A stretch of 64,000 nt of DNA from Perna viridis (GCA_037379345.1 CM074514.1:6510001-6574000); one strand, 5' to 3'. Shown: positions 38,913 through 60,035, counted from the first letter of the stretch. Notes: generated from the letters alone by a model not told the origin. Numbers and translations are program-made.

Positions 38913-39053
38913 CTTGCCATGATAGTTGTAACACCTGTGTAGACCTAACAAGATACCACTGTCAGACCTGTAAACCAGGTCTTCTCTGGAAAGATGGAGA
39001 ATGTGTGTCCAGATGTGGAATGGGGTATTATCAGGAAGTCACACATTGTTACA
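38913..39053 (+). CDS. FRAS1: FRAS1 exon w12, furin-like repeat 2
   Basis: tttttcag|...|gtaggt; CHDSCNTCVDLTRYHCQTC...CVSRCGMGYYQEVTHCY; phase 1-1. Confidence 0.9.
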
Positions 39054-39070
39054 GTAGGTACACAAGGGGA

Positions 39071-39129
39071 GGAAAGAATGTGTGTTCAGGTGTGGGAAGG
39101 GGTATTATCACACATTGATACAATAGGTA
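39071..39129 (+). repeat. Single decayed copy of the exon w12 3' end plus donor
   Basis: GAATGTGTGTTCAGGTGTGGGAAGGGGTATTATCA-CACATTGATACAATAGGTA vs exon GAATGTGTGTCCAGATGTGGAATGGGGTATTATCAGGAAGTCACACATTGTTACA|GTAGGTA. Confidence 0.85.
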
Positions 39130-39196
39130 GAATAATTATCAACAAGGCTAGACAAAAGGATGGTTTGCTTCTTTCAGGATATTTTTTTTTCAATTT

Positions 39197-45794: not shown

Positions 45795-45951
45795 GAGAAC
45801 AGATCACCACTGATTGTAAACAATGAGGTGGGCCATGTTTATTCCAAAGACATGCTACAAATATCTCCGAACTTACTGATGACTAAATCATTGTCTGATA
45901 GCAAAGACATTATCTATACACTGAGCCCTACATCTAATAATCCTCAGCATG
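45795..45951 (+). CDS. FRAS1: FRAS1 exon w21, CSPG; its 3' end seeds the 76-bp array
   Basis: ttcctcag|...|gtaaga; ENRSPLIVNN...DIIYTLSPTSNNPQH; phase 0-1. Only the first donor avoids a stop codon. Confidence 0.92.
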
Positions 45952-48322
45952 GTAAGAATAAAATCATTGTCTGATAGCAAAGACATTATCTATACACTGA
46001 GCCCTACATCTGATAATCCTCAGCATGGTAAGAATAAAATCATTGTCTGATAGCAAAGACATTATCTATACACTGAGCCCTACATCTGATAATCCTCAGC
46101 ATGGTAAGAATAAAATCATTGTCTGATAGCAAAGACATTATCTATACACTGAGCCCTACATCTGATAATCCTCAGCATGGTAAGAATAAAATCATTGTCT
46201 GATAGCAAAGACATTATCTATACACTGAGCCCTACATCTAATAATCCTCAGCATGGTAAGAATAAAATCATTGTCTGATAGCAAAGACATTATCTATACA
46301 CTGAGCCCTACATCTAATAATCCTCAGCATGGTAAGAATAAAATCATTGTCTGATAGCAAAGACATTATCTATACACTGAGCCCTACATCTAATAATCCT
46401 CAGCATGGTAAGAATAAAATCATTGTCTGATAGCAAAGACATTATCTATACACTGAGCCCTACATCTAATAATCCTCAGCATGGTAAGAATAAAATCATT
46501 GTCTGATAGCAAAGACATTATCTATACACTGAGCCCTACATCTAATAATCCTCAGCATGGTAAGAATAAAATCATTGTCTGATAGCAAAGACATTATCTA
46601 TACACTGAGCCCTACATCTAATAATCCTCAGCATGGTAAGAATAAAATCATTGTCTGATAGCAAAGACATTATCTATACACTGAGCCCTACATCTAATAA
46701 TCCTCAGCATGGTAAGAATAAAATCATTGTCTGATAGCAAAGACATTATCTATACACTGAGCCCTACATCTAATAATCCTCAGCATGGTAAGAATAAAAT
46801 CATTGTCTGATAGCAAAGACATTATCTATACACTGAGCCCTACATCTAATAATCCTCAGCATGGTAAGAATAAAATCATTGTCTGATAGCAAAGACATTA
46901 TCTATACACTGAGCCCTACATCTAATAATCCTCAGCATGGTAAGAATAAAATCATTGTCTGATAGCAAAGACATTATCTATACACTGAGCCCTACATCTA
47001 ATAATCCTCAGCATGGTAAGAATAAAATCATTGTCTGATAGCAAAGACATTATCTATACACTGAGCCCTACATCTGATAATCCTCAGCATGGTAAGAATA
47101 AAATCATTGTCTGATAGCAAAGACATTATCTATACACTGAGCCCTACATCTAATAATCCTCAGCATGGTAAGAATAAAATCATTGTCTGATAGCAAAGAC
47201 ATTATCTATACACTGAGCCCTACATCTAATAATCCTCAGCATGGTAAGAATAAAATCATTGTCTGATAGCAAAGACATTATCTATACACTGAGCCCTACA
47301 TCTAATAATCCTCAGCATGGTAAGAATAAAATCATTGTCTGATAGCAAAGACATTATCTATACACTGAGCCCTACATCTGATAATCCTCAGCATGGTAAG
47401 AATAAAATCATTGTCTGATAGCAAAGACATTATCTATACACTGAGCCCTACATCTAATAATCCTCAGCATGGTAAGAATAAAATCATTGTCTGATAGCAA
47501 AGACATTATCTATACACTGAGCCCTACATCTAATAATCCTCAGCATGGTAAGAATAAAATCATTGTCTGATAGCAAAGACATTATCTATACACTGAGCCC
47601 TACATCTGATAATCCTCAGCATGGTAAGAATAAAATCATTGTCTGATAGCAAAGACATTATCTATACACTGAGCCCTACATCTAATAATCCTCAGCATGG
47701 TAAGAATAAAATCATTGTCTGATAGCAAAGACATTATCTATACACTGAGCCCTACATCTAATAATCCTCAGCATGGTAAGAATAAAATCATTGTCTGATA
47801 GCAAAGACATTATCTATACACTGAGCCCTACATCTAATAATCCTCAGCATGGTAAGAATAAAATCATTGTCTGATAGCAAAGACATTATCTATACACTGA
47901 GCCCTACATCTGATAATCCTCAGCATGGTAAGAATAAAATCATTGTCTGATAGCAAAGACATTATCTATACACTGAGCCCTACATCTAATAATCCTCAGC
48001 ATGGTAAGAATAAAATCATTGTCTGATAGCAAAGACATTATCTATACACTGAGCCCTACATCTAATAATCCTCAGCATGGTAAGAATAAAATCATTGTCT
48101 GATAGCAAAGACATTATCTATACACTGAGCCCTACATCTGATAATCCTCAGCATGGTAAGAATAAAATCATTGTCTGATAGCAAAGACATTATCTATACA
48201 CTGAGCCCTACATCTAATAATCCTCAGCATGGTAAGAATAAAATCATTGTCTGATAGCAAAGACATTATCTATACACTGAGCCCTACATCTAATAATCCT
48301 CAGCATGGTAAGAATAAAATCA
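45885..48322 (+). repeat. Tandem array, 32 x 76 bp, made of the exon w21 3' end (67 nt) plus donor (9 nt)
   Basis: Unit AAATCATTGTCTGATAGCAAAGACATTATCTATACACTGAGCCCTACATCTRATAATCCTCAGCATG|GTAAGAATA. Register recurs at 45961, 47101 and 48241 (15 x 76 apart). Confidence 0.98.
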
Positions 48323-48604
48323 AAATTTGATAAAGCTTCTGGGGGAAAACATATATTTATGATATGTGTACCTAACAGTAGAGATCATGCCATTTGGAGT
48401 ACAATGCTATCTGTTTAAATCAATTTTTTTTGCTGACTCGTAAGGTTAACATTTTAGCTATACCATTAATCTTCTAATGTGTATTTGAAGTATAAATGAA
48501 ATTCCTTATTCTAATTATGTGTGCATATAATATACATATATTAGGTGAAGATATCCTACATGTTTACTATGTATAAATGTTGACATGATGTTTTATCTTG
48601 ACAG

Positions 48605-48783
48605 GAGAAATTCTGATGCTTGTCCCAATACCTTCCAATGGTGTTGGGAAAGGTTGGCAGGATATGGGAGATGGTCAAATGGCCGCTAAAATGTTCCAGT
48701 TTCTACAGAGGGATGTCAATGAAGGTAGAATATGGTACCATCATACTGGGACCAAGACATCATCTGATATTATCACTTTTGAG
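48605..48783 (+). CDS. FRAS1: FRAS1 exon w22, CSPG
   Basis: cttgacag|...|gtgtgt; EILMLVPIP...FLQRDVNEGRIWYHHTG...ITFE; phase 1-0. Confidence 0.93.
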
Positions 48784-50821: not shown

Positions 50822-51031
50822 GAGAAACATTTACATACAAGGAATTTTTGGATGGAGGATTTCGATACAGTCATGACAAAATAAACACCATCCCTTATGA
50901 TGCAATTGTACTCTCAGCTACAGATGGAAAATTTGATTCTCAGATGATACTTAACATTACAGTGACACAGGTTGATAAATCAGCCCCAATTTTACTGTCG
51001 TCTGCAGTCTGTAGACTTTATGTTAAAGAAG
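50822..51031 (+). CDS. FRAS1: FRAS1 exon w26, CSPG; its 3' end seeds the 68-bp array
   Basis: atttcag|...|gtaaga; ETFTYKEFLDGGFRYSHD...VDKSAPILLSSAVCRLYVKE; phase 1-1. Confidence 0.93.
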
Positions 51032-51785
51032 GTAAGACACAGTTAGGTCAGCTCCCATCTTACTGTCGTCTGCTGTCTGTAGACTTTATGTTAATGATGA
51101 GACACAGTTAGGACAGCTCCCATCTTGCTGTTGTCTGCTGTCTGTAGATTTTATGTTACAGAAGATAAGACACAGTTAGGACAGCTCCCATCTTACTGTC
51201 ATCTGCTGTCTGTAGACTATATGTTACAGAAGATAAGACAGTTAAGACAGCTCCCATCTTACTGTCGTCTGCTGTCTGTAGACTATATATTACAGAAGAT
51301 AAGACACAGTTAGGACTGCTCCCATCTTACTGTTGTCTGCTGTCTGTAGACTATATGTTACAAAAGATAAAACACAGTTAGGACAGCTCCCATCTTACTG
51401 TCATCTGCTGTCTGTAGACTATATGTTACAGAAGATAAGACACAGTTAAGACAGCTCCCATCTTACTGTCGTCTGCTGTCTGTAGACTATATGTTACAGA
51501 AGATAAGACACAGTTAGGACCGCTCCCATCTTACTGTTGTCTGCTGTCTGTAGACTATATGTTACAAAAGATGAGACACAGTTAGGACAGCTCCCATCTT
51601 ACTATCGTCTGCTGTCTGTAGACTTTATGGTAATGATGAAAAGACACAGACAGGACAGCTCCCATCTTACTGTCATCTGCTGTCTGTAGAATTTATGTTA
51701 ATGAAGGTAAAACACAGTTAAGACATCTCCCATCTTACTGTCGTCTGCTGTCTGTAGACTTTATTGTAATGAAGATAAGACACAA
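50981..51785 (+). repeat. Tandem array, 12 x ~68 bp, made of the exon w26 3' end plus donor
   Basis: Units start at about 50981, 51049, 51114, 51182, 51248, 51316, 51384, 51452, 51520, 51588, 51656, 51724. Confidence 0.96.
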
Positions 51786-59194: not shown

Positions 59195-59457
59195 CAGTGG
59201 AGGAAGGTCTTGTATAATTTAGATAAAAAATTGTTTAGGGATTTATCTGTTTGAATCATTTTCAGACAAATCAGACTGTCACACAATGAATAAAAATAAA
59301 AAAAACCTGTCTCACACTTTTAATTTTGAACCTTATATTCATGAATTTACTTTCAGCTGAAAAATGCTACATTAATGGTATCCTTTGAGATAAAAATAAC
59401 TTTAGGTGTATTTCTTTCCCTTTTGATATGTGTTTTACTTTTGTTTAAATCTTCCAG

Positions 59458-59766
59458 GATCAAGGCTTTCTATCAAATCTCTTGAGCTCAAAGCTACAGA
59501 CATAGATTCTGATGATTCCAAGCTTAAGTTCACACTGACCAGGGATCCAACAGGTGGACATTTATTGTTACATAGGGATGGTAGAATGATCACCTTGGCA
59601 ACCAGAGGGCCAGTTAACAGTTTTACCCAGTTTGACATTGACCAAGGTCATTTGGAGTTTGAACATCCTATAGGGGAGATAACTGGTGTATTGACATTTA
59701 AATTTGATGTTGCTGATCCTGAAGAGAATAAACTCATTGATCAGATTTTCTACATTACTGTTGAAG
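59458..59766 (+). CDS. FRAS1: FRAS1 exon w34, CSPG
   Basis: cttccag|...|gtgaga; LKATDIDSDD...GPVNSFTQFDIDQGH...FKFDVAD...ITVE; phase 1-1. Confidence 0.95.
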
Positions 59767-60035
59767 GTGAGAGAATGCATATATTTCATTTTTCATATTG
59801 AGGTAAGCATATTTTGTAAGATCTTTGTCACCAATGGAAGGTGTCAAATTCTCTGTAAACAGTATGAAAATTTGTAGTTGTTAAGGAACAAAACGTGTGC
59901 ATTACAGTAAAACAGCACATTAACCTGAAAATTTCAAATAATATTTAAGGCACCAAAATCTTATCGAGCAAACTTAGCAATATTATCAAGATGTGAAATA
60001 ATTTTTTTTATGTTGAAAGATTCTTTAAATTGTAG

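Follow-up and report, generated by a model that had tools for sequence, protein, structure and literature searches.

In intron 7 of human F7, the first monomer of a 37-bp minisatellite lies across the exon 7 boundary, and only the most upstream of the 5-9 identical 5' splice sites (donors) is used (PMC1557585). Work with 50 constructs showed that the downstream pseudo-sites are functional but out-competed by a 5'-to-3' oriented search, and exon skipping was promoted when the first usable site lay further off (PMC1557585). Other donor-bearing minisatellites behave in one of two ways. The authentic donor and the two nearest pseudo-sites are used in IFI 6-16 intron 2 (25 pseudo-sites) and in CBS intervening sequence 13 (IVS13; 15-20 repeats), and the authentic donor only is used in LMNB2 (10-15 x 100 bp) and PDGF intron 4 (16-18 x 81 bp) (PMC1557585). 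Amphioxus carries related structures termed 'mirages' (Adh3, the globins BflGb6/9, TnC and PGBD5), which are length-unstable, boundary-spanning tandem repeats with concerted evolution within arrays, and which are reported not to disturb splicing or yield aberrant mRNA (PMC3087553, PMC3902484). Here we describe an array of this kind in a 64,000-nucleotide (nt) stretch of Perna viridis (GCA_037379345.1 CM074514.1:6510001-6574000), referred to below as the window, in which the end of one exon of FRAS1 is repeated 32 times together with its donor. We consider it to be, probably though not with certainty, a young intronic minisatellite with its first monomer over the exon-intron boundary, whose decoy donors are ignored and which arose as a mutational by-product, not as a regulator of FRAS1.

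Structure and reality of the array

Tandem Repeats Finder returned 45885-48322 as a single array with a period of 76, 32.1 copies, 99% matches, 0 indels and a score of 4820. Each unit consists of 67 nt from the 3' end of the exon, which we call w21 (45885-45951), followed by the first 9 nt of the intron. The host intron measures 2653 nt, of which the array takes 2371, and the next exon, w22, starts at 48605. The features of the locus are given below, where all coordinates here and throughout are those of the whole window on the plus strand unless a contig is named, a slash marks a splice boundary, and P0092 and P0022 are FRAS1 relatives from Halocaridina rubra and a fish.

45795-45951, plus strand: exon w21 (157 nt), acceptor ttcctcag/GAGAAC; first half of a CSPG/Cadherin_3 repeat, aligning to P0092 residues 1317-1371
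45885-48322, plus strand: 76-nt minisatellite, 32 full copies and 6 nt (32.08); copy 1 is the real exon end and donor, copies 2-32 are intronic
45885-45890, plus strand: left AAATCA microhomology, inside the exon at the array start
45952-45957, plus strand: authentic donor ATG/GTAAGA, with U1 complementarity at six contiguous positions, -1 to +5
46028-48313, plus strand: 31 decoy donors, GT at 46028 + 76n with the last at 48308; these match the authentic site over at least 12 nt
47025-48316, plus strand: 7-unit (532-nt) super-repeat; the variant column reads GAAAGAA GAAAGAA GAA across copies 16-32
48317-48322, plus strand: right AAATCA microhomology, a partial 33rd unit at the array end, followed by unique intron AAATTTG
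48323-48604, plus strand: unique intron tail of 282 nt, acceptor ttgacag/
48605-48783, plus strand: exon w22 (179 nt), carrying the second half of the CSPG repeat begun in w21; Cadherin_3 27.7 bits; P0092 1371-1435, P0022 1344-1402

A previous reading of the window from the sequence only (the sequence-only reading) had described 67 exonic and 9 intronic nt in 32 head-to-tail copies within a 2.65-kb intron, and the Tandem Repeats Finder result and our reading of the units in register agree on this. It had also described every copy as keeping an identical donor and an identical upstream context. The first part stands, with the donor CATG/GTAAGAAT the same in 32 of 32 copies. The second does not, as eight copies (2, 3, 4, 16, 20, 23, 27 and 30) carry an A-to-G change 16 nt 5' of the donor. 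When the units were cut in register this site, unit position 52, was the sole variable column and all the rest were the same in 32 of 32. The 12-mer CATGGTAAGAAT occurred 32 times at a spacing of exactly 76. Such an array cannot be produced by chance. The window contains 0 N bases. The GC content of the genome is about 32%, which speaks against Branchiostoma.

The FRAS1 array has the structure of an F7-type donor minisatellite in every respect, being intronic and head-to-tail with a boundary-spanning first monomer and a reiterated donor. Like F7 (Borensztajn et al. 2006, PMC1557585), it presents an authentic donor followed by identical pseudo-donors, and most of the decoys would break the frame. 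The F7 units are 37 bp with 4 exonic nt in 5-9 copies, whereas those of FRAS1 are 76 nt with 67 exonic nt in 32 copies, with full exonic context for each decoy. Donor choice was tested by constructs in F7 and is predicted for FRAS1. The IFI 6-16, CBS, LMNB2 and PDGF arrays are also long donor arrays, similar in unit size and copy number, although from other genes and other organisms, and the 31 decoys of FRAS1 are slightly above the largest array listed in PMC1557585. Intron gain by tandem duplication of an AGGT proto-splice site (the Rogers model; PMC2891723, PMC4974935) likewise gives extra copies of splice signals; unlike that model, the FRAS1 duplication includes an existing donor and lengthens an existing intron with no new intron formed. 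From these comparisons, the kind of array is already known (F7, mirages) and choice of the first donor would have precedents. What the locus offers is a large natural test of positional 5' splice site choice, with 32 identical donors over 2.4 kb and 67 nt of true exonic context for each, larger than the F7 model that was used in the argument for 5'-to-3' scanning.

An assembly-wide search with the unit (723,115,551 bases, 46 contigs) gave 15 matches, all 15 within this array. A dispersed repeat or transposon-borne satellite was ruled out as the origin, the unit having no matches at other loci in the assembly. A protein-word search with the w22 open frame led to one 90-residue genomic open frame on two Logan contigs from two different runs (L029 and L030). 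Both contigs are unspliced DNA with 99.64% and 99.75% identity to the window, and both start at 48293, which is 30 nt (k-1) before 48323, the first unique base past the array. A start k-1 before the first unique base marks a branch in the de Bruijn graph, so that each of the two samples must have two or more copies of the unit and share this right-hand junction. The array was therefore not invented by the assembly, and its copy number of 32 rests on one assembly. We also considered whether a genuine array might have been inflated in length or smoothed into uniformity by the assembler or by polishing or, in the extreme form, might not exist. Consensus polishing can yield near-perfect identity, the copy number has a single assembly behind it, and the BflGb6 mirage of amphioxus was mis-assembled in a draft genome. 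The two independent runs with their right junction and branch argue against an artefact, as does the modest size of the array (2.4 kb within a 46-contig, 723-Mb assembly). The ordered A/G pattern with its 7-unit super-repeat could not be created by collapse or smoothing, and fits expansion by unequal exchange. Taken with these points, an assembly artefact appears unlikely. Arrays of this kind are likely to be length-polymorphic markers.

On the sense strand, an AATAAA hexamer is formed at each unit junction 5 nt 3' of the donor (45957-48322, every 76 nt). The intron thereby has 32 of the 115 such hexamers that the window carries on its plus strand, and these 32 could be cryptic poly(A) signals, each beside a U1-binding site. 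No long open reading frame (ORF) runs through the array on either strand.

Host gene and donor choice

Open frames on the plus strand encode VWC-type Cys repeats at approximately 14-37 kb, then furin-like Cys repeats at 38-43 kb, and CSPG repeats from 43.6 to 63 kb. Pfam Cadherin_3 (PF16184) was matched by 7 of 10 exon translations, searched individually, and 931 relatives came from a full HMMER search in which a single exon (59427-59798) was the query. When the relatives were compared to the window by tblastn, the best colinear matches were P0092, P0022 and P0015 (3952-3970 residues, approximately 40% identity), whose residues 1 to about 2336 match in order across 18757-63035. The colinear chain ends at about residue 2336 of about 3970; the Calx-beta repeats and transmembrane segment expected at the C terminus of FRAS1 lie beyond the window. 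The names given at source are 'Extracellular matrix protein fras1' (Halocaridina rubra; P0092) and 'FRAS1' (Tautogolabrus, Labrus), and further relatives included FRAS1 from a lamprey, a bat and several sponges, with an Oscarella pearsei transcript among the latter. As the sequence-only reading had proposed, the gene is an ortholog of FRAS1: it shows the FRAS1 domain order, with N-terminal VWC, then furin-like Cys and then CSPG/Cadherin_3 repeats, and is colinear with the named orthologs. The remainder of the gene is intact across at least 30 exons.

Exon w21 ends in ...NNPQH and the first base of a Gly codon. Past donor 1 the frame runs through G K N K I I V into a stop, as had been claimed before and as we found on re-reading it; since 76 is not a multiple of 3, use of any of donors 2-32 would bring in a stop. 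The end of w21 (...YTLSPTSNNPQHG) aligns to P0092 ...YTLLPMLQNPGHG, ending at residue 1371, and the start of w22 (GEILMLVPIP) aligns from P0092 residue 1371 (GKLTLMIPLP). The junction made from donor 1 to w22, PQHG/EILML, matches the contiguous NPGHGKLTLMIPLP of P0092, and in the fish protein P0022, KHGE and GEVV-LMSMP abut at 1344-1345 (KHGEVV-LMSMP). These alignments indicate that joining donor 1 to w22 restores the conserved and uninterrupted P-x-H-G-x-L core of the CSPG repeat. None of the orthologs aligned has room for an insertion at the w21-w22 junction. On reading frame and alignment together, the first donor is shown to be the only one predicted to yield FRAS1 protein.

All features from 67 nt 5' of each donor to the array end are alike among the 32 donors except for one A/G, and discrimination between them could thus be by position only. 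The earlier proposal of a choice by position alone appears logically sound on the same ground, as the donor contexts agree bar that one site, and the F7 experiments would serve as its precedent. By analogy we expect use of donor 1, 157 nt past the upstream acceptor, with at most a small leak to decoys 2-3. We infer that the spliceosome would pick donor 1 as the first reached after the upstream 3' splice site, whether through exon definition or through a search oriented 5'-to-3', and that removal of the intron would take the 31 identical decoys with it. Were the nearest decoys used at a low level, the products would gain 76n nt (76 or 152 for decoys 2-3), meet a stop after seven codons and be cleared by nonsense-mediated decay (NMD).

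Recursive splicing was considered for the unit and rejected. The unit contains a CAG that ends 4 nt before the GT (CAG CATG GT) and so does not abut it, which excludes a recursive splice site with a zero-length exon. Stepwise removal or a 4-nt micro-exon through the unit's CCTCAG would leave 4 additional nt and shift the frame. Arrays of this kind can mislead gene prediction and the mapping of RNA sequencing reads. The earlier statement that short reads cannot tell the donors apart is half right; it fails for donor 1 against donors 2-32, which are separated by a read across the CATG/GAGAAATT junction with more than 67 nt upstream.

Origin, age and effect on FRAS1

The state before the event, as reconstructed here, had one AAATCA hexamer in the exon and the other in the intron, 9 nt from its start. 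The two were 76 nt apart, and slippage between them, or repair mediated by their microhomology, would have duplicated the exon end with its donor, and unequal exchange would then have taken the unit to 32 copies, in part as 7-unit blocks. The mean pairwise difference among the copies is 0.51%, all from one site, and the window differs from the two independent contigs in the flanks by 0.25-0.36%, which is of the same order. Because divergence between copies is close to the allelic difference of the flanks, the array is either young or constantly homogenised. The array would be neutral or slightly costly, a by-product of a genome rich in minisatellites that preferentially carry donor sites. Nothing indicates an effect of the array on FRAS1 function.

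Two older copies of exon ends with donors were observed in the same gene.

50981-51784, plus strand: older sister array, 68 nt x 11.9, 89% matches; another FRAS1 exon end and donor
38995-39130, plus strand: oldest echo, a single diverged copy of about 70 nt; a furin-repeat exon end with a weakened donor, GTAGAA

The GT was lost in 10 of the 11 downstream copies of the 68-nt array: eight read AT, one has a 3-nt deletion and one reads AAAAGA, with the remaining copy keeping GT without the G at +5. Four differences from the exon copy are common to all 11 downstream copies. State changes numbered 8 in the 9 donor-core columns versus 28 in the other 59 columns, an approximately 1.9-fold ratio that is not significant, and a single G-to-A change spreading through the array accounts for most of the GT losses. 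The oldest copies within the gene have not kept their donors, and the presence of exon-end arrays of three ages within one gene points to a recurrent mutational process.

These older copies bear on the proposal, made in the sequence-only reading, that copy number tunes FRAS1 through NMD. As a regulatory splice-donor VNTR (variable number of tandem repeats), the array would feed a fraction of transcripts into decoys that rises with copy number, NMD would remove them, and array length would set FRAS1 output. Every decoy reproduces the real site at full strength, every decoy product has an early stop, IFI 6-16 and CBS use their two nearest pseudo-sites constitutively (PMC1557585), and an association with splicing variation is reported for thousands of human tandem repeats (PMC10078293). 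However, known leakage is limited to the nearest one or two decoys, which gives no scaling with 32 copies, and the pseudo-sites of F7, LMNB2 and PDGF are silent (PMC1557585). The decay of donors in the two older arrays is also unexpected if reiterated donors are useful, and similar arrays are spread over unrelated genes, with many more genome-wide. We found no support for tuning by copy number and consider a regulatory role improbable.

Several points weigh against our preferred explanation of a by-product array whose first donor is used. The copy number comes from a single assembly. An exact-ORF look-up and protein-word searches with w21 and w22 matched genomic, unspliced contigs only and no RNA. 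The precedents are all from vertebrates or amphioxus. The excess of donor motifs described below exceeds the prediction of random birth, and 'mere by-product' may hide a specific mechanism. Lastly, earlier experiments with duplicated donors, as cited in PMC1557585, disagreed over the copy that is chosen, and there is a low chance that the donor closest to the 3' splice site prevails; donor 32 would leave a compact intron of 297 nt. Extended to the whole allele, use of donor 32 or of a spread of decoys would predominate, and the allele would be largely non-productive, a recent deleterious expansion in one individual on which, with the array very young, selection may not have acted yet. Set against this, the upstream site or sites are used in all natural donor-minisatellites studied (PMC1557585), decoy 32 needs a 2.5-kb exon, the other exons of the gene are intact and two further runs also hold the array, and we regard such an allele as very improbable. 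With these points considered, we retain as the most probable explanation a young by-product array spliced from donor 1.

Donor motifs in minisatellites across the genome

Donor-bearing arrays were also observed outside FRAS1.

L009 7494-7845 (G000:C4:50127494-50127845), 43.5 Mb away on the same contig: 89-nt x 4 array; its first copy closes a WD40-like open frame (…GHSENVSKIVFTPDNKNLLSVGEAVYMWDF…) at GTAAGT, with a donor every 89 nt
L010 1518-1691 (G000:C4:1001518-1001691): 87-nt two-copy duplication, 97% identity, ending a 62-codon open frame at GTAAGT
G000:C1:68673098-68676353: 58-nt unit x about 56, with AG/GTAAGT, a polypyrimidine tract, CTGAC and CAG/G
C4:8012525-8013722, C2:69277510-69278118, C5:16915407-16915555, among several contigs: dispersed minisatellite family with units like GGTTTTCAGGGTTCTGTTTAGACAGG

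The L010 duplication, which came from a randomly sampled stretch, is possibly a newborn donor echo. The array on contig C1 appears to reiterate a whole mini-intron with a 14-nt exon-like piece.

We used an annotation-free test in which triplets of a motif at 36-66-nt spacing were compared with those of a mirror-image control motif, the triplet match counts being inflated by large arrays.

AGGTAAGT (donor consensus): 379 triplets versus 149 for the control; all sites 23,394 versus 42,348; relative excess 4.6-fold
TTTTCAGG (acceptor-like): 191 triplets versus 63 for the control; all sites 58,311 versus 37,327; relative excess approximately 1.9-fold, with counts partly inflated because of the dispersed GGTTTTCAGGGTTCTGTTTAGACAGG-like family
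GGTAAG (weaker donor motif): 3467 triplets versus 2312 for the control; raw ratio 1.5

In 246 kb of sampled non-array DNA, GGTAAG and its control stood at a background ratio of 0.71. Counted as distinct arrays on contig C1, there were 16 with AGGTAAGT, their unit sequences unrelated, versus two with the control, a split with a binomial probability of approximately 5e-6 at a background ratio of 0.55. Among 51 arrays in 264 kb of fetched sequence, a test for donor 5-mers showed no enrichment, with 9 arrays observed versus about 8 expected, in a sample too small for power. Within the window, our own arithmetic, which is only suggestive, gives approximately 0.4 donor-spanning arrays expected (from some 17 arrays and some 33 donors, at a unit length near 50 nt) versus two to three seen. 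At the motif level, the presence of donors in minisatellites is systematic in this genome.

The recurrence of boundary repeats across genes of one genome is shared with the amphioxus mirages, here with two more in FRAS1, the L009 array, the L010 candidate and the 16 arrays on C1. Mirages occur at both 5' and 3' boundaries, whereas here the enrichment of the donor motif is well above that of the acceptor-like motif. The lack of acceptor-spanning or exon-internal arrays can be put down to selection. Selection only removes arrays, however, and so the donor excess does not follow from random birth and selection alone; a bias in the places at which arrays arise or survive is likely. Carried further, the FRAS1 array would be one visible outcome of a process acting across the genome, in which minisatellites form by preference at 5' splice sites through a mechanistic route (e.g. 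transcription, U1 binding or R-loops at donors), and not just by the survival of harmless arrays, in an animal possibly outside the cephalochordates, the group in which mirages have been described one gene at a time. We put this forward tentatively, as a possibility with the balance of judgement against it. The excess does suggest that the 'mirage' phenomenon is quantifiable, and its cause may be mechanistic and relevant to intron growth and turnover. The genome-wide donor bias, supported here at the motif level, is the more interesting lead.

As a separate observation, intronic minisatellites are packed very densely here, with approximately 17 arrays of a period of at least 20 in the 64-kb window, versus approximately 34 in 200 kb sampled elsewhere on the contig.

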